Positions 14,700 to 59,930 of a stretch of DNA of 64,000 bases are shown one piece after another. Positions within the stretch are counted from its first letter, which is position 1. Each line of letters starts with the position of its first letter. This stretch comes from Cycas panzhihuaensis (Eukaryota > Plantae > Cycadophyta), in NCBI GenBank assembly GCA_023213395.1, contig CM041465.1:83335741-83399740 (forward strand), in the 5' to 3' direction. The translations under genes were made by a program, and so were the position numbers. The notes beneath the pieces were generated by a model. The model was not told the DNA's origin and ran no database searches. It saw nothing but the letters and a program-made list of their open reading frames with translations.

Positions 14700-15076
14700 T
14701 GTTTGGAAACATAAAATCATACATGAATATTCCCAACTACAGAATCTTTTACCATACACAACAAGCAAACAAACAAATATACACAGATAACAGATGCATA
14801 GTACACAGAAATTTACGTGGGAAAGCCCTTTTAGGAAAAAATCAATCACAAAATAATCCTTGATGGATCTCTTAGATTATTGCACAATGGATTGATACAA
14901 TGATCTTGGATGATGAATACATAAGGCCTCAAGACATTTATACTCTCCAAGAGGTGTCACTCAATTAGGGTTGTGACCCTCTGAATAAGTCGCACCTTTT
15001 GGCTTTGCACCCTTTCACTTAATTAGACCTCATTAACATTAACTAAGTGGCTTAATAATTAACTACCACATTAACA
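14700..15076 (-). repeat. 3' LTR of Copia B
   Basis: TG...CA ends; aligns without gaps to 20668-21044. Confidence 0.95.
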
Positions 15077-31581: not shown

Positions 31582-34013
31582 TGATTTTTTTTTCTAAAAT
31601 GATGTATTCTAAGTATGAAATCCTCATTTTAAAAAATTCATATTTATTTATTTTTTCATATAATTTATGTTTTCTTATTTTTTCAAGTATGTTTTGAATA
31701 TTCTATTCATGTTCTATTTTAGTTTTTGAATACACTAAAATATCACCCAAAAATATGATTATAAATATATCTAAATAGGATTGGAATATATCATTCATTA
31801 ATATCATAAAAGTAGTTAGTACATTAGTTAGTCTAAAGAATAAAACAACAAATTTATAATGGTTATACCTAGTTCAAAATTTTATTTTAAATATATCTCC
31901 TTGCTTAATTTTGATTTCATGGTAACTTAATCATAAATTTTTTTTTAAAAAATATTTAGTACTGTTTAATTAATCTAAAATATCATCGATCCCAAGTAAT
32001 AGTTATTTATTTTTTATTGTCACATTATTTAACTATCAATAATCAATGCATAATCTTAAGGTACCATCTTTCTTTTTAATGAATAGAACTAGTGCTTCTT
32101 ATAGAGAGATGTTGAGTCTAATCTTACCCTATTCTATTAGTTTTTATAGGTGTATTCTAAGATTAGTTAATTATGAAATATTAACATGGAGTTCTTGATA
32201 CTAGTTTTGCTTTAGGAATGAGATCTATTACATGTTCCATAACTTTTTGGGGAGTAGTTCTTTAAATCTTAAAAGAAATACATCATTGAATTATTTAATA
32301 ATCAAATGACTAGTATGATCATTACTATATATTTAGGTGTTTTTGAGTACTAGTGTGCAAAAAAGTTTATATCCTTTACACATATATCTTTTAATTTATG
32401 ATGTAGAAATGGTCTATAATTATATGGATCTCTTTTCCTCTTGAATAATACTAACTCCATCAAGTTATCTGGTTACTATAACTTGTTTATTGTGGCAATA
32501 AACATAAGTATTATTAGGTCATAACAAAGTCATACCTATTATAATGGTATTTTATCGAAGATTTAGTAATTAAAAATATTCAAATGTTTGATAACCATTT
32601 ACTTTGAATCTTAATTCCTCCAATATAGAATCAATTTATCTAAGTGTTTCATCTTCATCCAACTCTACCTAAGAGGGTTCTATTTTTTTACATATTATAT
32701 TTAATTTTAAAAAATAATTTTGGTGAAATAAAGTTATGGCTACTTTCAGAATCTATCCAAGTGATAAAAGGCCATTTATTTATTTTTTCTTTAACTTGTA
32801 CCAAAGATAATTATTTATGTATGCTATGTGACTCAATGGCAATATGGACATGTATTTTGGGTTGAGTTTGCACTAGGTATTTTACAATTGGAATTCTTTC
32901 TTCTAATGTATGCTTTTGAAGTTAAGGGCAATTTAGTTTGTTTAAAATATGCTTTTTCACATTTCCAAAATTTAATAGTTCTTAATTGGATTTCTTGATT
33001 TTGATTATTGCCTACAAGTTTTTCTAAATGAACTCTGACATGTATAACTTTTCTTTGTAATATTATTATTATAGCTACTTATTTTTCCTCCTTGGTAGAG
33101 TCTTCTTTAATGTTATAAGATACCACCTTTACAGGTGCCTTCTCATTTATGCACCCATTCTTTTCTCTTTCTTTTACTTAATCTTTATTCTTCATACCCT
33201 TGAGTGAGTGTGGTTGCTTCATCCATAGGATTAGGTTTTCCACCTTAAATATTAGCATAGTATTCTTGATTGAGTTAATTTTAAAATCTTATGAGTCTAT
33301 CTTTACCCTAAGCAAATGGTACAAAATCTATTCAAAGTTTCAAATTATTATTTATAGTCCTCAATACTGAGACTTCTCCACTTTAAGTCAAACTTATTTT
33401 CTTTGTTTTAGAGGAAGTTGTATGAAATAAATTTGTTAGAAAATTTCTTTTATGAAATCAATTTGGTCTTTGTCTTATAGCTTAAGAGTTCATCACACCA
33501 TTAGGCGAATGTAAAGCCTTTTAACTTATATATGGTGATTCTATTTTTACAATCACTACTCAATTTCTTTAACTCAAAATACCTTTCCATATTATCTAAC
33601 TAATTTTTTGCATCTTCTTAAGTGTTTATTTTTTCCTTCATATTCCAAAAGTTTCAGTTTCCTACAATAGTGATTAATATCCTTTTATTCCCTTTTCCTT
33701 CTTTTACAATGAAATTTCACATATGACTTTGAATTTGGTTTGCTAAGGTTTAGATGATTCATGTATTGATTTTGTACTATTAGAATTTTCATCTAATTCA
33801 TCACTTCTTCTTTTTCCTTTTTGGGTTTTATCCTTATAATTTCATGTTTTTCCTCTTATCTTACATGATTTCTATTTGTTTTTATTTTTGCACTTTCTAT
33901 CTACTTTCCCTAAGGGTTCACTTTTACTTTCTTCACTTCCTAATATGAATCCTTCTATATTTGCTTCTATATAAACTTTTATATCTTATAGTCATTCATT
34001 GTTTATCATATTC

Positions 34014-34257
34014 TATTACAGACCTACTCTATAACTTGAGGAGGAAGCCAGATATAATAAATACACAAGAGCATTTGCAAGATTGAATAGTCCAAAAGAC
34101 TAATTGATTGATTATAAAAGTATAAGTGATGTCTAATGTTATAATACAAAAGGTTTTTATATGTATAGACTATGCCATTTTATAAAGGATTATAACTATT
34201 CAATAGGCACCCCTTCATTTAATATTCAATTAATTAACCTTAAGGGGGTTCATAATA
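34014..34257 (-). repeat. 3' LTR of element E
   Basis: Aligns without gaps to 37344-37587; PPT adjacent. Confidence 0.93.
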
Positions 34258-35560
34258 ATTCCTCCCCCTTACAATGTTTTGCCTATGAAATATATTTGAA
34301 TGATTGGTTGATTACTTCAATCAAGGTAGTTCATAATAAGACCTTCTTCTTGAAATGTTTCATCTTCAAAATTTGATTGAGATAACAATTAGTTTGATGT
34401 CTCCTCTTATTGATGAAAGAATATCATACTCATCTGATGTATATCATCGAGTCATACTTGCTAGAACTTTAACTAATAATGAATATGCATACAATGGCAA
34501 GCTTGAATAAGTTGATGTAGCCATGGACCAATTAGAATTTGTCGATTACAAAAATGTTAAATTCCTATATGCTTTACCCTATAGGATAAAGATTATTACC
34601 ATGGTATCTTCCATTTGATTTTGACTTTAATCTATCAACATACATATTATTGTCTTAGAATGTATGGTTTCACACCAATACTTGAAAACTTCTCAAATTG
34701 ATTAGGAGGCAAAATGGTTGTTCCTGATACTAGAAAATCCTCAAGCACATATGATATAATTATTTGATTCATATTATTTGGTCGATTAAGAGGTGAGCTT
34801 GTTATTATTAGTATCAGTAACATTTGTTTAGATTGATCAAGAGATGTTATTGGTATTGTTTGGTCCTTTTTTAATTGATTAAGAAATGTAGATATCACCA
34901 CTCTCATTAGTGACCATTTTAGTATATACTCGATATTTTTATAAATTATTATGTTTTCTTTTAGGAATGATACCAACATTTTGCCCTTATTAACTATTCA
35001 TGATTCATCCTTATTTTCCTATTGTACATTATTTTCTTCTTTTTGTATACTCAAATCATGTATTAAGATTATGATTTAGGTTATAGGCTCTTTTTCTTTT
35101 TGTATTGCATGATCTTGTATTCCATTGGCTTTTAATATATATGTGCCATCCTCATTTGCATTGTTGATAGATTTATTCATATGTCTTTTATGATTTGTAA
35201 ATGAATTTTCTCAATTTAACTCCTATAATCTTTTTACTTGTTCTTTTAATTTTTTGTCCAACATTAATAAGTAAGTATCATTGAGGTTTACTAACGTCAA
35301 AGAAGATTCTTTATGTTTATCTTCACTTTCTATGTCTAAAAACTTTTTATTTTTTTCCAATTTTCTATAAGTACTTACTTCTACATGTTCTTTAGGTGAA
35401 AATTTTATCTTTGGAAATTTCTTATTTGTAAAAACCAATTTGCTTTATATAAAATGGGAAAGCAACTTGGAATTTGACACTTAAAGGGGTCCATGTAAAC
35501 CAATAGAATAATTGTATAAGTCTTGATTATATGTTGTTGATAGAAGTGTACCAGCCTTAC

Positions 35561-36146
35561 TTCCAAAAGTTCCACTTCCCATCTACATTTTAGGTAATAT
35601 TCTTTGGGAAGTAATGCCCAAACCTTTAAACAATCTTTAAGCCAATGATGATTGACTAACTTTATTCCTATTTATTTAGCAACCCTATACTTGTCACCTT
35701 CATGCTTGTAACAAATGAGAGGTGTTACTTTACTCATAATCAATGGCTTTATAAATTGTTCTCCCATTATTTCAACCATTCTCATAAGGACACAATGATC
35801 TTGACCTTGATACCTAGTTAAGCAAATGCATAAGGATACACTGCTTGGAATGCCCATCATATTTTTTTATAGGTTTGTATAATATCTTATCAGTATCTAC
35901 AAGTATTCCACTAGCCAAACTATATTCAATTCATAAGTGTATAACTAAAACCTTCCCATCCTTCCTAGCCATACCACAAATACAATTATAATATGATAAT
36001 TGGTAAATAGTGACATGAGTATAAGTTATGTCATATCTTCTTGTGTTGAATACCCTAATATACATAAGCTCTATTGTATATTTGTTTTATGTTGTAGGGT
36101 TGAATCCTACTAACATAAATCTTACTCCATGAAATAATAGTCCCAT
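35561..36146 (-). pseudogene. BCP1: Intronless fragment encoding the N-terminal tandem BRCT domains of a BCP1/DDRM2 (At4g02110-like) DNA-repair protein
   Basis: Hand translation: MGLLFHGVRFMLVGFNPTT*NKYTIELMYIRVFNTRRYDITYTHVTIYQLSYYNCICGMARKDGKVLVIHL*IEYSLASGILVDTDKILYKPIK/NMMGIPSSVSLCICLTRYQGQDHCVLMRMVEIMGEQFIKPLIMSKVTPLICYKHEGDKYRVAK*IGIKLVNHHWLKDCLKVWALLPKEYYLKCRWEVELLE. It matches the recalled At4g02110 motifs GVKFALVGFNP, THLIV, GKVVV..SWV, ILYRP...GIPG, CLTGYQG, MG.QFSKPL...VTHLICYKFEGEKY, IKLVNHRWLEDCL..W.LLP. Three stops and one frameshift in an A7 run. Confidence 0.9.
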
Positions 36147-37343
36147 TCTCTTGCCTTGAATATATATGCATACATATAAGAGAAATATAAGCATTAAGGT
36201 ATGTAGACCTTACCTTAGAAATTGTGGCGATATGCTTTGCATAACTTATGATTATTGTAAGTTTAGAGTACATTTATAATCTTGCAAAGTCTCTGGAATA
36301 TGGAACCTCCATTTGAAATTGTATTTATTTGCAATTCGATGTGGAGGTAATATATATTATACTTGGTTTGTTTGATTTAGATATGTTGCCTTAGTTTTGA
36401 GATACCACCACTTCATCCATGTTCAAATAGGTTACTCCAATTACTTGACTCTATTTCACATTTATGTTATTTTCTTCATAACTTTTATAAAATAATATAA
36501 TACTTGGACAACTCCTAATAGTATTATGTTATATATAATATTATAATATTATATGTAACAAGATCAAATCATAAAATAAACATTATTGAAAACTTTTTTT
36601 TTTGCATGACTATTAATTGTGATAATACTAAGTATTTGTGTAGATCAAATAATATACTTTGCACGCTACCATCCATATGCTTATAAGTATTAAAGTGATG
36701 TATAATACAATATGATAATTGAAAAGAATTAGTAGAATATATTATATATTAAATATATAAGGTCAGTGATAGGGCAACGAATGGAGGAGAAGACACAATA
36801 TAAGGGAATGTCAATGTAAAATGGAAGATGATGTAGGGAAGACGCAAGATATAAGACAATGCAGAGAACAGAATAGAAGATGATGTAGAGAATAGAATGG
36901 ACAGAAAAGGAATGGAATGAGAACAAGAGTAGGAGTGGGAGTGGACGGAATAGAACATGACATAAAGGTGATACGAGAGGAATGATGCAAGGTGGATGAC
37001 TATTAGTAGTTCTACCGCAACAACTTCATATAATAAGACACAATGCAATGGGTTGCTAGAATGCAAAGAACAAGACATAAGGACTACATAGATGCATTAT
37101 GATAATATGTCAAATGAAATGTAGAGGCTCATTTATATTCATTGTTTGGTTAATAAATATATGTGATATGTAAATTTTAAGATGATATGTAATGATTTAA
37201 AGAATTATGTATGCCTATGCGACTTTTGAATTAATGGAAGAAAGGGTATTAATTTGGGTCAAAGCTTAGTTCTTTAAATGCTAAGAATCAAGAAAATAAG
37301 TTTTGTTGATGAATCTCGATTGAAGACTCACATTAATACCACT

Positions 37344-37587
37344 TATTATGGACCTACTTCATTACTTGAGGAGGAAGCCAGATATAATAAATACATAAGA
37401 GCATTTGTAAGATCAAATAGTCCAAAAGACCAATTGATTGATTATAAAAGTCTAAGTGATGCCTGATGTTATAATATAAAGAGTTTTTATATGCATAGAC
37501 CAAACCCTTTCATAAAGGGTTGTAACTATTTAAGAGGCACCCCTTCATTTAATATTCAATTAATTAACCTCAAGGAGGTTTGCAATA
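37344..37587 (-). repeat. 5' LTR of element E
   Basis: Next to the PBS; partner of 34014-34257. Confidence 0.93.
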
Positions 37588-39302
37588 TATTCTTCTTTTC
37601 TTCTTTTTTATAGTTTGTGTTTCAATTCAACTAATTTAGCCAACATCTTATCTAGGCTTCTATTGAGAGCTTAGTTCCTTTCTATCAATATTGCTATATT
37701 AAGGACATTGTCTCTATCCATTGGTTTAGTTGTCATTTCAATGATCCAAATTATGGTCTTAATTCATAAATAAGTGGTGTGCAATTAAAAATTAAAATAA
37801 AAATTGCTAAAATATTAATACAATGAGATATTTATGAATCAAGTGTAAGAAATCTCTTCAATGATGGTTCATTTGAGAGAGAGAAAGTAAGAGGCTATTC
37901 TTCTAAGGGTGTTCAAGATTTGACTCTAACAAAGTTTCACATACTAGTTTGTATCTCTTCATAGTTCTTTGGGAGAAAACCCTTTTATCTAGCAAAAGTT
38001 TAAACTAAATGATAAACCCATTTGTGTGGCAAAAGATTATTCTCAAATGTAGTATAAGTAATACATTGAGAATTAGTTATTAGCATAAAATCTATGTAAG
38101 GGGGTAATCTTGATCTTACAAGTGCAAGCGTTGAATTGGTACTTAGAATAAGCATGGTCATACCTATGTTCTAAGCATGTTAAAATTATAGAAGTTCTTG
38201 TATACTTAAGTACTAATAAAGGTGTAAATGGTTTTAGTCTTGATCCCTCTCTTGGGAAATTCATTTTGAATCATCCAAATATAAAGATCCCTAAGAAAGG
38301 AAAAAATTATTTAGTGAATAAAGGAAAAGTAAAGAATTAGGATGTACCCACAACAAAGTATATTGAGAAATGTAAGTTCTTTAAGGATGGATTATCCCCT
38401 AAGTCTATAAGATATATTAGAAGGTGTACACCCCCTCATTTCCTCTTCCTATTTACCTAGGAAAGTGTGTTAGCATTTAGGGGAGAAAGGTTTTACCTAT
38501 GTGTGATGTATTTGATTTCATTAGCTTAATATAAAAATGGATCAACAATTCCTAAAGTGGATTTTTGTCATTTACTCAATGTAGGAAATTGATAGTTTAC
38601 TATGGAGGTGAAATAGGGTTAATCCCCATCTCATTTTCATTTCATCCCCCCCTCGATCCCTCTTTTCTTTTATGGTTATAAGTTCTCAAAGGAGGTAGTG
38701 AAGAGTGCCTAGGGGGATATCCTTTTGTATTTTATGTAGGGTTTATGAAGAAAGTGACTAAAAATCTGCATAAATTATATTCATACTTTGACCTTCTTCT
38801 TAATATGAGATTTCATTTATTAGTTTTCTTCTTTTAGGTCATGATGTACACCCCAAGGTTTCATTTGTAGTGGTAATTTATAAACTATGAAGGTCGAGCC
38901 CAAAGCATTAGGACATCTCAACATAATGGCATGGAGTGTTTGATTTCATTTCTAGGCCTATATATAGAGTGTTTATCCTTTATTTTAGAAATAGAAAATG
39001 CAATATAATAGTATCTTAGGGGTTAAGCAAATCTTCAATCCCATATGAAATTCTTCAGCTTTATCAATGTTCATAATAGATGGAAGTAGTTAGAAAATTC
39101 CACTACTTCTCCTTTGGTTAAATAATATTATTATAATCCTAGGTTTCTTGTTGTAGATTCTTAGCTTAGATTTATGTTTATATACTATAGTTGGTGATAC
39201 AATGAGGAGAGGAATATATAGTAGCCAGAGGAAAAGGCTACTACTTGTAATAATTGTGATTCCCACTCTGTGTCATCTTGTTAGAAGTGATGGTCCAGTT
39301 TC

Positions 39303-53719: not shown

Positions 53720-54396
53720 AAGAAAAAAAGGAAAAAAAACAAAAAAAGAGCATGTGATCCAAGGTAACAAATTGAATTACATTCTAGAGAACTACCAATC
53801 TTGCCTCTGCTGGAGCTGGATCTGCGTCTTCGAGCTAGGGTTCATAGCGTGGCGGCGCAGGCGTTCTTAGGGATTGTCTGGATGCCATGGCGTCTTCCAG
53901 AGGTTGAAGGCATTGCAGGCCGGCCGGCCTTTGAAGACTTGTTTTGGCTATCCTCTCTCGCTCTAGCTGTGGAGGTGCTTGAGGAATATGCATTCGGATC
54001 GAGACTAGAAGACTTGCTCATTAGAGGAGGCAGAACGCATCATAGTGTCGATACTCTACCGTGGACTCCAGATTTCTGTTTTCACTGGATCGTCCTTCTA
54101 GAGGAAGAGCGCCGCCTTATCAAGGCTGATCAAACGGGTGAGTTTTGGCTTGGGGAGGGACGAGGGACCCTCAGATGCTCATGCAGACACCGGACCTGCT
54201 TTAATGGTGGATCTATTTTGAATACACTACTGAAAATTGGGCGGGGTTTTTGGAAAGACTGGCTGATACTTGGTATGTCATTACATGCTGGTCTGGAGTT
54301 AGTTTCTTGGAAAGATTGGATGAAAAGGCTTGAAATGCCAATGCTATTTTGTTGTGTTGCTTTGCTGGCTTTTTTCTGTAATTTTCTCTTAATATA

Positions 54397-55722
54397 ATGG
54401 AAAAAGATCAAACCTATCTAAACCAGAACCAGAACCCTAACCTGGCCTTGGGGAGAACTTATTGCGATGTGCTGAAAACAAACGAGGTAGAATCCTTCGA
54501 CCTAACACCAGAGATCGTGGATAACGAAGCTAGGTTGCAGATTCCTTTGGCTTTGGTAGAAAAAACTGAAAAATTATGGGAGAATTGCCTAGTGGGCAGA
54601 TTTTCAGGCCCCAGGCCGGGATTGGAAGCCATAAGGGCATAGACAAAGACGAAGTGGAGAATAATGGGGGGTGTGGAGGTAATAGCCATGCCTAAGGGCT
54701 ATGTGCTATTTAAATTTACCTCATATGACGACATGTCTGGTATTCTGATTAGGGGCCCTTGGATGTTTGGACGTAAGGCCCTCCCTCTTGAGAAATGGCA
54801 TAGGGATTTTGATCCCTCGAGCCCTAAAATTAGACAAGCTCCAATTTGGATCCAACTCCTGGGCCTCCCTCTTCACCACTGGAACCCTAAAGTGTTTAGA
54901 GGCATTGCGAAAGTGGTGGGCCCTCTATTAGCTGTCGACTCAGCGACGAGGAACAGGAGTAGGCTTATAAATACCAGAATCTGTGCTCTGGCAAGATTAG
55001 ATAAGCCCCTCTTGGAATATATTAGGATGGAACTGTCAGACAAGAGTTGGGTCCAACCGCTGGTTTATGAGATGGACCATTTTAGATGTTCAACTTGTAG
55101 AAATTTGGGGCACTTACCTCAGAAGTGCCAGGGAGTTCAGCCATTAAAAGATGACAAAGAAGGAAATCAACCTACCTCAAACCCCCAAGAATCTGGGGTG
55201 GGTGTTGAATGCCCAGCACCCCCGGGGAATGCAGAGGACTCTCCCCAAAATTTGGGTTTTGACCCTAATGAGGAGGACACGCTGTTGGAGGAGGAAGACT
55301 AAGAGGCTCAGGCCCATGTGACCTAGAAGGGTTCGGCTGGGGTGGATGGAGTGGGGGATTCCCCCCACTCTGGGGATGAGCTAGCCCATATTGACATGCA
55401 AGGACAACCCAGGCTGGAGGAAGAGAAGAACAAGATGGTAGGGTTGGAGACAGAATTAATCTCAGCGGTGGAAACGGTTTAAGGGGTTGGTTGCATCGAG
55501 GTTCTAGGTAGGGCGACCCCTGTTTCACCGCCGCACTTGGCCTCATCTCAAAAGAAGATGCCTGACGTGGGTGTCGAGAGGAAGGTTGGTAGGCCGCCTT
55601 CTAGGCTACAAAGGGAAAGAGATTCGACTGCTCAGGTCGATTTTGGCACCCAAAAAACTTTAAAGGAAGCATTCCTTGAAGGACCTATTCTTAGATCTAG
55701 TACAAGAAATGAGACCCCCTAA
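54397..55722 (+). pseudogene. LINE ORF1 (DUF4283-type domain plus CX2CX4HX4C knuckle)
   Basis: WENCLVGRF, GPWMFG, PIWIQLLGLPLHHW, CSTCRNLGHLPQKC. Interrupted by stops at 54640 and 55300. Confidence 0.92.
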
Positions 55723-55761
55723 GGGGGATACTGCAGAGGTCTGGAAACTGAGAAAGAAACG

Positions 55762-58700
55762 ATGAAATTTATTTCATGGAATACTAGGGGTTTGAACGCC
55801 CCTTCGAAGCAAAGAATAATTAAGGATATGAGAGATAGACATCAATTGGACCTATTATTTCTGCAAGAAACAAAGCTGAGTAAGGAGAATGGATTAAAGA
55901 TCAGAAACAAAATCTGGAAGCAAGCGGAGGGTACAGAGAGGGACTATAGTCAAGGTATCAGAGGATTGATGGTGCTGTGGAACCCATCTATCTGGTTGGG
56001 AGAAACCTTTTTGGTTGAGGACTCCTTCATCTCAGTTAGACTAACAAGCAAAAGTAACAACATTACATGGATGGCCACCAATGTTTATGCCCCAACTCTT
56101 CAAACAGCTAGGAAGGGGCTTTGGGATAGACTGATTGAAGCCCACAGGGATTGCCAGCTCCCATGGCTGCTGGTGGGAGACTTTAACTCGGCTTTATCCC
56201 CTGGAGATAAGAAAGGAGGCACCGGGGGTTGGACCACTAGTATGGCTGAATTTGGTGACTTCCTCCAACAAGGGGGTCTGGAAGATGTCAGGCTTAGTGG
56301 GGCATCTTACACCTGGACGAACAAGAGGTTGGGGGATAGCCATATTCAAATCAAGCTAGATAGGGTGCTAGTGAACTATGATTAGATGAGGTGTTTTCTG
56401 GACTTTGTGCTAGAGGCATTGCCGAGGATAAGTTCGGATCACTCACCTCTTTTGCTACAATTTTTTGATCCGGTGAAATTCAGCGGGGCCCCTTTCAGAT
56501 TTGAATTAATGTGGCTCTACCATCCTGATCTTCGGAACAAAATTAAGGATTGGTGGGGTATAGACATTAAAGGTCACGCTATGTACAGATTTTCAAAGAA
56601 GCTGGACTGGGTTAAAAGACAAATAAAGGCTTGGAACAAGGAGGTCTTTCAAAACATAAATGCACAAAAGGATAAAATAATCCAGGATCTAAAAAGCATC
56701 GAGGAACAAATTGAGTAGTTGGGTAGATCAACGGAGCTCGACAAGGCGGAGAAGGAGCTCACGGAGACCATGGAGGAGATACTTAACAGGGAGGAGACCC
56801 ATTGGAGACAAAAATCTAGGGCCCTCTGGTCAAGGCCATGTAAATACTACATTTTTCCATATGACCACTGTAAAACATAGGGCGAACAACAGGATTAACA
56901 GTCTTATTTCGGATGATGGGTCAGAGGTCAGCTCAGTCGAGGGTATGAAGGAGCTGGCTAGTGATTACTTCAAGAACCTTTTTATACCACAGCCAGATTT
57001 GGTCGAGAAGAGAGTTCCTGAATAACATCCCTTGTTTGGTGAATAGGGAGCAGAATGCCTAGCTTTCAGCCCCATTCACTCAGGATGAGGTCAAGGAGGC
57101 TCTCTTTGGTATGAAGAAAGATAAGGCGCCGGGCCCTGATGGATTTCCCCTGGGGTTCTTTTAGGAATTCTGGGATATTATTAAAGGGGACCTCATGGAT
57201 GCCTTGAAAGAGTTTCAGGAAAACAGAAAGATTCTGCAGGAGTGGCAGTCCACTTTCCTGGTCCTTATCCCCAAGAAAGATGGGGCAAAAAGGATGGAGG
57301 AGTTCCGCCCTATAAGCCTTTGTAACGTTAAGTACAAAATTCTTACTAAGGTTCTGGTGAATAGGTTGAAGAAAATTATGCCAAACATTATTTCCCAAAA
57401 CCAAGACGGTTTTATTCGGGGTAGACAGCGATATGATGGCTATATTGTTGTGCATGAAACAATCCACTCAGCTGCAGAAAGGAAAGAGCCTGTGATGCTT
57501 ATCAAGATTGATCTTTCGAAGGCCTTTGATAGAGTCTCCTGGGTTTGTCTGCTAGATTGCCTGGGGGCATTTGGCTTTGGGGAGACTTGGCGGTCATGGA
57601 TTAAACTATGCATTGGCAACCCACAATTTTCGGTCATTATAAATGGCTCTTCCTCCAGATTTTTTCCGGGATTCAGAGGGCTGAGACAGGGAGACCCTCT
57701 CTCTCCCTTCTTGTACATTACGATGGCTGAGCTCCTAGGTAGAACCCTGGAGTCAGTCAGAAGGCAGGGGGCCATAAAAGGTATAAAGCCGACATCTGGG
57801 GTGGATAATGTGGCTCATCATCAATTCGTGGATGATAATATTTTTTTGGGAAAGGCTACTATAAGTGAGGCCTCCAAATTTAAGGAGATTTTGGGCCACT
57901 TTGAGGAGGCCACGGGCCAAAAAATAAATTTCAACAAGAGCAGTGTTTTCTTTATCAATACCCTGGGTTATGTCCAAGGCAGGATTAGTAGAACTTTAGA
58001 GATGAAAAGCTCCCCACCATTTATCTTGGGCTGCCACTCTTCGTTGGGAGAATGTCCAAGGATATGTGGAACCCCCTTATCGACAGGATGCAAAGGAAGC
58101 TGGCGGGCTGGAAAGGCGCTCTCTTGAGTTTAGCCGGAAAACTCTAGTTAGTTGCCTCGACGTTGTAGAGCATCCCAGTTTTTTGGATGTCTATTTTCAG
58201 GGTTCCAGCGGGTATATCAAATATTATAGAATCTATTCAGAAGAGATTCCTCTGGTCGGGGTCAGAGAGCAAAGACAGAATTCACTTGGTTAGTTGGAAT
58301 AAGTATGCACTCCGAAATGGGCCGGGGGCCTCAACCTAAGAAGGACTCCTCTCTTCAACGCTGCCCTAGGAGCTAAATTGGGATGGCGATTATTTAAAGG
58401 GGGACAGAGACTATGGGAGATGATCTTGGAAAGAAAATACATTCAAGGGGGCTCTCTCCTCAGGAATGAGGTTTCACAGGTTGGTTCTACAGTCTGGAGA
58501 AGCATACTAAAAGCATGGAGGAATATAAGGAATGGGTTGAAATGGAGACTTGGAGACAGTAATTCCATCAGATTCTGGGAGGACGTATGGTGTAGTGACG
58601 TAGCGCTTAAGGACTACCCGGATCTGGAACCTATTATGGGTCCTCAGAATGCAATATGGTACCCAGGTTAAGGATTACTGGATTGGGAATGGCAAAAACA

Positions 58701-59930
58701 AGAGATGGAAGCCCTTCGAGGAAATCCAAACTGAAGGATGGCAAGAGAGCTTAAACAAGTTAAAAGAGATTCTTGGTAAGAATTATATCCCTAGATTGTC
58801 CTTGCCGGACTCGGTTGTGTGGCCTTTGGGGTCAGTCCGGACTACACTGCTAAACAAGGATATCAGTTCCTTTGTTTAGCCAGAGGGGACCACAGAAATC
58901 CTACCCTTGCTAGTGTTTGCAGGCTCCCTATTATACCTAAGATCGCCATATTTTGGTGGACCTGCCTGATGAATAAAATCCTCACCATAGACAATCTCAA
59001 GAGGAGAGGCTTTTCGTTGGTGAATAGATGTCCTTTATGTTGCTCAGAGGAGGAATCTATGGATCACATATTTATTGGGTGCTCCTTTACGAGAGAGGTC
59101 TAGAGGTTGTTACTCGGGAAAATGGAGGTTTGCTGGATCTTCTCAGAGAAGACTATTGACTTATGGCTTGCCTGGCTTAGCCCCTTTAGAAGTAGAATGC
59201 TAAGCAACATTTGGAAGTGCACGCTTCTGATTTTAGCTTGGAATATATGGAAGGAGAGAAATCAGAGAATTTTTTAGGATACCCAGATGGATCAGACTGC
59301 CGTTTTCAGCAGAATAAGTTTGGACATAAAGGAAAATGTTGGGAACGTGAAAGAAAAACATGTTTCCTTGACGGAGAGTAGAATTTTAAGCAGATGGGGT
59401 ATTCGGCTTGATTTTGAGGTGGTTAGGCCTAGATGTAGCAGTTGGCAGCCCCCAGAGGAGCCCTGGATTAAAGTTAACTTCGATGGAGTGGCCAAAGGGA
59501 ACCCCGGGGAAGCGGGCGGTGGGGGTATCTGCAGGGATTACACCGGCTCCCCAATCTGGGCTTTTGCGGATTACTATGAATGCCAGACAAACCACTATGC
59601 AGAGATGAAGGCTATGTTTAAAGCCCTAGACCTAGCTGTTAAAGGAAATGCCCAGCGTTTAATTTTAGAGGGGGACTCAGAGGTGGTGCTCAAGGTTCTG
59701 AGAGGGGAGGCCCTTCTAGACTGGAGATTCCAGACCCTTTTCAATGACACCAAAGAGATCATTTAGGGGCTGGCGGAAGTCTAAATAAGGCATACTTTGA
59801 GAGAAGGCAATAAGCCCGCTGATTTCTTAGCAAATTGGGGTGTAAGGCACCGAAAAGGTCAAGTTTGGAGAGGCGAGTTCTCTAGGGATCTTATGGTTCT
59901 GGTAGAAAAGGACATGATCAGTATTAGCTA
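55762..59930 (+). pseudogene. LINE ORF2 (APE endonuclease, RT, zf-RVT, RNase H)
   Basis: ISWNTRGLN, LQETK, NVYAP, GDFN, KLDRVL, SDHSP; KAPGPDG, FRPISLCN, KIDLSKAFDRV, GLRQGDPLSP, QFVDD; CPLC..EEESMDHIFIGC; KVNFDG..KGNPG, EGDS. Several stops and frameshifts. Confidence 0.95.

Follow-up and report, generated by a model that had tools for sequence, protein, structure and literature searches.

The 64,000-nt stretch of the Cycas panzhihuaensis genome analysed here (assembly GCA_023213395.1, CM041465.1:83,335,741-83,399,740; termed the window, in whose positions all coordinates below are given) is AT-rich, with a GC content of 33%, and dense in retroelements. Among these is a minus-strand long terminal repeat (LTR) retrotransposon of 3,574 bp (3.57 kb) from LTR to LTR, which is structurally complete, non-autonomous and now dead. 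Between its LTRs it carries a decayed cargo with homology to the N-terminal BRCT domains of the plant protein At4g02110. The features that delimit the element are the following.

34009-34013, no strand: left copy of the target-site duplication (TSD), TATTC; the same 5-mer stands at 37588-37592
37588-37592, no strand: right copy of the TSD, TATTC; the same 5-mer stands at 34009-34013
37344-37587, minus strand: 5' LTR, 244 bp; 87% identical, ungapped, to 34014-34257
37330-37341, minus strand: putative primer-binding site (PBS) TGGTATTAATGT, of a decayed initiator methionine tRNA (tRNA-iMet) type, read from the sequence 2 bases from the 5' LTR
36147-37329, minus strand: leader of 1.18 kb between PBS and cargo; no protein-family match
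34259-34270, minus strand: polypurine tract (PPT) AAGGGGGAGGAA, read from the sequence 1 base from the 3' LTR
34014-34257, minus strand: 3' LTR, 244 bp; 87% identical, ungapped, to 37344-37587

The two LTRs align without a gap and are identical at 213 of 244 positions, with 26 transitions and 5 transversions making up the 31 differences (Kimura two-parameter distance 0.143). Their outermost bases agree (TATTA on one side, AATA on the opposite side), which indicates that a first-pass annotation of this locus, in which a complete 3.57-kb element with 244-bp LTRs and a TATTC TSD had been described, placed the borders correctly. The TSD is perfect on both sides, and a TATTC match at these fixed positions has a chance probability of ~0.0017. 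The same annotation had reported a PBS and a PPT. The PPT was recovered immediately beside the 3' LTR; the putative PBS (37341->37330) agrees at 8 of 12 positions with the general plant tRNA-iMet consensus TGGTATCAGAGC; three of the four mismatches are transitions, and the presence of TGGTAT within 6 offsets has a chance probability of ~0.002. Both signals lie at the inner LTR edges and in the minus orientation only, so the element reads 37587->34014, in the same sense as the BRCT frame. The leader is pyrimidine-rich on the element's sense strand and contains 23 ATGs. A 24-nt tandem repeat of 3.1 copies (36820-36898) lies inside a strongly strand-asymmetric tract of this leader, and a 16-nt inverted repeat (88%; 37245-37260 / 37325-37340) would allow the PBS to pair with leader sequence 64 nt away, possibly as a PBS stem. 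No LTR copies beyond 34014-34257 and 37344-37587 were found in the window, where two long words of the repeat occur nowhere else, and the window holds no empty-site paralogue of the element's flanks.

The claim that the element lacks gag and pol motifs also held: across 16 open reading frame (ORF) pieces on both strands, no Pfam family other than BRCT was matched, and comparison of the element with the rest of the window, which includes a long interspersed nuclear element (LINE), revealed no similarity by tblastx or blastn. The gag, protease, reverse transcriptase, RNase H and integrase that define an autonomous Ty1/copia or Ty3/gypsy element were thus found neither by Pfam on the 16 ORF pieces nor by tblastx against the window. 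The miniature elements of the TRIM type (terminal-repeat retrotransposons in miniature) are taken here as those under ~1.5 kb in total whose LTRs measure 100-250 bp. The element resembles them in its short LTRs, here of 244 bp, its PPT, its 5-bp TSD and the absence of any coding capacity of its own, and its putative PBS is of the tRNA-iMet type; its LTR length fits that class, whereas its total length of 3,574 bp exceeds the usual limit. The distance between the LTRs corresponds to ~33 million years at a gymnosperm rate of 2.2e-9 per site per year (PMC13477047), and the observed/expected ratio of CpG is 0.2.

The cargo and the breaks in its frame are located as follows.

35562-36146, minus strand: processed fragment of an At4g02110/DDRM2/BCP1-type gene, comprising BRCT1 (~36140-35900), BRCT2 (~35860-35590) and 9 further codons (translation, Pfam, tblastn)
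36087-36089, minus strand: in-frame stop 1, in BRCT1 (translation)
35931-35933, minus strand: in-frame stop 2, at the end of BRCT1 (translation)
35862-35868, minus strand: 7-base homopolymer with a frameshift between BRCT1 and BRCT2; the tblastn segments switch frame at 35853-35866
35672-35674, minus strand: in-frame stop 3, in BRCT2 (translation)

The identity of the cargo is supported by several searches, in whose alignments each break was read as X. A 62-aa ORF piece matches the Pfam family PTCB-BRCT (PF12738) with E=2.1e-9 and 37.7 bits against a cutoff of 22. When compared with 1.84 billion protein representatives, this 62-aa piece returned 97 matches, of which the long ones (1,100-1,460 aa) align at residues ~100-170; the named matches are "BRCT domain-containing protein At4g02110" across all land plants, and the best come from Taxus and Cryptomeria. 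Conversely, 30 orthologues searched by tblastn against the window matched 36140->~35530 only. Residues ~27-220 of the gymnosperm orthologues align colinearly with the cargo, whose identity is 51-55% to gymnosperms and 42-50% to angiosperms. In a maximum-likelihood tree it stands beside the gymnosperms (support 85/74) on a very long branch (2.41), and in an approximately unbiased test its placement with angiosperms or with non-seed plants was not rejected (p=0.22). Among PDB sequences the BRCT2 piece had no match at E<=0.01, and homology upstream of the ATG at 36146 was not significant (P 0.5-0.8).

At4g02110 has been described as DDRM2, with BRCT1 at aa 9-87 and BRCT2 at aa 105-194 (bioRxiv 10.1101/2022.04.08.487320), and as BCP1 (PMC9791218), which bears out both gene names that the first-pass annotation had attached to the tandem BRCT frame. 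By homology, then, the cargo is the N-terminal BRCT1-BRCT2 pair (~195 codons) of an orthologue of this homologous-recombination factor. It differs from the intact protein in the absence of the linker, the C-terminal BRCT pair and the PHD finger, in its broken frame and in the loss of several invariant residues. The C-terminal BRCT5-type pair and the PHD finger are present in the family proteins P0001 and P0102 and were absent from the element and the window by tblastn, from which it follows that the cargo is a fragment and not a gene of the family. The C-terminal BRCT of P0001 and P0102 matches the Pfam family RTT107_BRCT_5. That family takes its name from a yeast protein that regulates Ty1 transposition, which is curious for a gene of which a retrotransposon has captured a part.

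Comparison with host genes revealed that the cargo lacks introns. A scan of metagenome contigs yielded 47 plant loci of the At4g02110-type gene, from poplar-, Vigna-, legume/pea-, crucifer-, grass-, composite- and fern-like genomes among others, as assigned by best protein match, and their exons were compared ungapped, one by one. The same seven exon ends recur in the first 195 codons of the host genes, at poplar residues ~29, 58/59, ~95, 127/128, 156, 178 and 192/193, following the motifs ..NPxxExQ, ..VDKIxY, ..xxVMY, ..DDIM, ..CYKFEG, ..WLED and ..YxK, and many of them have readable GT/AG borders. The cargo passes the equivalent points (~36081, 35991, 35880, 35783, 35697, 35631 and 35588) with no inserted sequence and so spans eight exons joined as in mRNA. 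Because it is uninterrupted at these seven conserved intron positions, which were established in the genes of other plants and not in the donor of this genome, the cargo is judged to be derived from spliced mRNA, in agreement with the earlier proposal.

At its 3' side, the cargo DNA is 73% identical over 35909->35562 to a conifer-like, intron-free metagenome contig (L016), and homology ends there, inside the eighth exon. Of the mRNA, the cargo has kept the 5' end but not the 3' end, a pattern that argues against LINE-mediated retroposition and would fit template switching while the element itself was being reverse transcribed. No convincing TSD of its own brackets it, and no poly(A) tract was found at either candidate 3' end, checks that the first-pass annotation had proposed for recognizing a LINE retrocopy. 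A 27-nt imperfect direct repeat (78%; 36151-36177 / 34621-34647) flanks the ATG-to-stop block 36146->34647; this may be chance in AT-rich DNA, where it is 1 of 13 similar low-complexity pairs, or the signature of a junction. The contig L016, which in its BRCT region shares 99% of amino acids with P0102, holds at positions 133-1545 an intronless stretch of the gene (residues ~104-579) with three frame changes and unrelated flanks. It is either an mRNA contig with many errors or a second processed fragment that arose independently in a conifer.

The breaks in the BRCT frame, which had been given in advance as three stops and one homopolymer frameshift and are now placed at the positions listed above, include as many stops as decay after insertion predicts. 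The mutation spectrum derived from the LTRs, with changes at ~17% of the G/C sites of each copy and a low share of transversions, was applied in a simulation to host-like codons; this predicted 3.3 stops per 195 codons and 16.5% of residues changed, and 3 stops are observed. Differences between the cargo and L016 show a 41:15 bias toward C>T/G>A. Cargo decay is therefore consistent with neutral mutation after insertion, as had been suggested. Over 114 codons compared with L016, the ratio of nonsynonymous to synonymous substitution rates (dN/dS) is 0.17 (bootstrap range 0.08-0.32), and where 16 orthologues are invariant the cargo has lost 29% of the residues, against 80% in variable columns. 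The invariant columns changed number 21 of 72 and include the glycine of the conserved LTGYQ motif; 5 of the 21 are tail residues past the end of homology that are probably misaligned, without which a hand count gives 16/67. The stop count, the dN/dS value and the retention of residues together indicate that, at the time of this insertion, the frame was host-like and probably open. A fresh capture and selection on the element account for such a state equally well, and one copy cannot separate the two.

Downstream of the cargo, the element contains one more stretch with a coding-like character.

34647-35470, minus strand: second decayed coding-like stretch, in the frame of the ATG at 36146 and ending at the stop 34649-34647 (stop count, shuffles)

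This region (35470->34647) has 7 stops in 274 codons, compared with 26-37 in the other frames and with at least 8, on average 21, in 5000 shuffles. No homologues of it were found by Pfam, by Atlas (score 0.76) or among PDB sequences, in which it drew compositional ND5 matches only. A word-index search with its 110-aa ORF returned nothing, a weak blank given that the index covers only proteins of 60-190 aa, and a single-sequence AlphaFold2 model of that ORF had a predicted local distance difference test score of 48. Comparison with the disordered linker of the donor protein showed no significant similarity, either in DNA (score 15; shuffles averaged 14.3) or in protein (z<=2); a 34-nt alignment gap would restore the right frame into the stretch, without statistical support. 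The stretch may come from the fast-evolving linker of the donor, from a further capture or from an old ORF that belonged to the element. The earlier description of the cargo as running from an ATG to just after BRCT2, as one functional module, is accordingly sustained as to the end of homology, at 35562; that a single neat BRCT module was captured is doubtful, given the second stop-poor stretch that follows.

We consider it likely that the locus represents an old, dead, non-autonomous minus-strand LTR retrotransposon carrying a processed BRCT1+BRCT2 fragment of a host gene as a passenger. For the present copy, the passenger reading, which the first-pass annotation had offered as one alternative, is the best supported, and no working gene is seen in its cargo. 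The roles suggested in that annotation, namely a reader that steers integration, interference at repair foci or a source of siRNA, find no support at this locus, where the copy is dead and its leader contains 23 upstream ATGs. Retrogenes of this kind are generally accepted to arise by template switching in the course of reverse transcription. The layout of the element, in order 5' LTR, PBS, 1.2-kb leader, cargo, PPT and 3' LTR, flanked by a 5-bp TSD, would be explained if the reverse transcriptase of an ancestral element jumped to a co-packaged spliced host mRNA and then back, a switch that would have lodged the 5' portion of that coding sequence between the leader and the PPT. An autonomous partner would then have mobilised the element in trans, and the frame of the copy seen here would have been open, or almost so, at insertion and would since have decayed neutrally through methylation-type C>T/G>A transitions. 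By extension, the cargo would have been a passenger in the family as a whole.

Several observations weigh against this account. Among the structural hallmarks of LTR retrotransposons, paired direct LTRs, a TSD of 4-6 bp and a PPT beside the 3' LTR are all present, and TG..CA termini are not, both LTRs running from TATT to AATA; LTR elements without TG..CA termini are known. The cargo is only 51-55% identical to conifer proteins that are 77-90% identical among themselves, which points either to a distant host lineage or to a period of evolution on the element. The cargo also starts at an ATG that lies just a few codons from the first conserved residue, and the stop-poor 274-codon stretch follows it, an arrangement that also fits an ORF that was once expressed.

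These points bear on a competing interpretation that we regard as unlikely, in which the cargo was a working protein encoded by the transposable element (TE). Selection would have preserved the BRCT pair, fused to the downstream region, during the spread of a non-autonomous family of many copies, of which the present copy would be a decayed member. The protein might have served as a tether to damaged chromatin, or as a dominant-negative form or decoy of DDRM2/BCP1. In favor of such a protein are the frame that was probably open at insertion, the low dN/dS (0.17) with its preferential retention of universally conserved residues, the ATG beside the first conserved residue, the orientation in the sense of the element and the second stop-poor stretch, which comes into register after two frame changes; the host family also has an Rtt107-type BRCT5, and Rtt107 is by its Pfam name a regulator of Ty1 transposition. 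However, all of these signals are equally expected from the recent capture of an mRNA under host selection, and the assessment rests on a single copy. The changes at 21/72 invariant columns (16/67 without the tail), including the LTGYQ glycine, and the 23 ATGs in the 1.2-kb leader also speak against a working product; non-autonomous elements do not require an ORF, and capture of first exons is a general rule in gymnosperms that implies no function. A shade less probable still is the more specific proposal of a high-copy gag-/pol-less LTR family with one selected ORF, consisting of a phosphopeptide-reading BRCT pair and a C-terminal part, which would act as a TE-borne decoy of an Rtt107-like repair/restriction factor or as a tether to damaged chromatin.

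The remaining explanations concern how the cargo and the repeats came together. That the cargo is a LINE-mediated retrocopy, or some other secondary insertion into a pre-existing LTR element, appears distinctly improbable: a near-intact LINE only 16 kb away shows that the machinery is present, and the 27-nt imperfect repeat (78%) brackets the ATG-to-stop block, but neither candidate 3' end has a poly(A) tract, the retention of the 5' end with loss of the 3' end is the reverse of the usual LINE product, and the repeat is just one of 13 similar low-complexity pairs. We attach hardly any probability to the idea that there is no single element at all and that a processed pseudogene or host-gene relic lies by chance between two solo copies of a short repeat. 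The non-canonical LTR ends (TA..TA) and the lack of a further repeat copy in the 64-kb window would suit this idea, yet the TSD, PBS and PPT stand at the exact borders of the repeats, in one orientation and on the strand of the cargo, a conjunction whose chance probability we place, partly by our own arithmetic, far below 1e-4.

The surroundings of the element are themselves rich in mobile DNA. The LINE just mentioned is a near-intact plant element at 53801-59766 (plus strand), with long ORFs that encode a DUF4283 ORF1, an APE-type endonuclease, a reverse transcriptase and an RVT_3/RNase H domain; the best public match to its reverse transcriptase is only 61%. Four further pairs of LTR-like direct repeats, 83-92% identical, lie at 14708/20676, 25543/31200, 39446/44118 and 46923/62429, placing the BRCT element in a nest of retroelements, and none of the four is similar to it. 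Outside the cycads, an annotated 438-aa protein of Tanacetum coccineum (P0089; GJW54607.1) has an N-terminus that resembles the end of a copia-type pol and a C-terminus that corresponds to BRCT2 of the At4g02110 family, and it is possibly a parallel TE-BRCT chimera in a composite.

Chimeric retrogenes and host sequences transduced by LTR elements are known from plants; maize Bs1 and the template-switch retrogenes of rice are examples. With these the Cycas element shares a spliced host coding sequence, oriented in the sense of a pol-less LTR element; it differs from them in host gene, plant lineage and element backbone. For gymnosperms, a recent survey of giga-genomes reported ~400,000 gene fragments captured by TEs per genome, with a preference for first exons and old dates of capture (PMC13477047, Plant Commun 2026). 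The present locus agrees with those captures in combining an LTR element with an exonic host fragment from 5' exons that is old and heavily decayed by transitions, and it differs in that the fragment spans eight mRNA-joined exons and the element is entirely devoid of gag and pol; BRCT genes are not mentioned in the main text of the survey (PMC13477047).

The element is therefore a real but ordinary case of a known phenomenon, the capture of gene fragments, which is very common in gymnosperm-type giant genomes. To that phenomenon the locus adds one well-documented capture, with eight exons joined as in mRNA and a dated decay. Should it prove true that the family kept the BRCT frame open, the element would represent a rare recruitment, by a retrotransposon, of a host reader of DNA damage.

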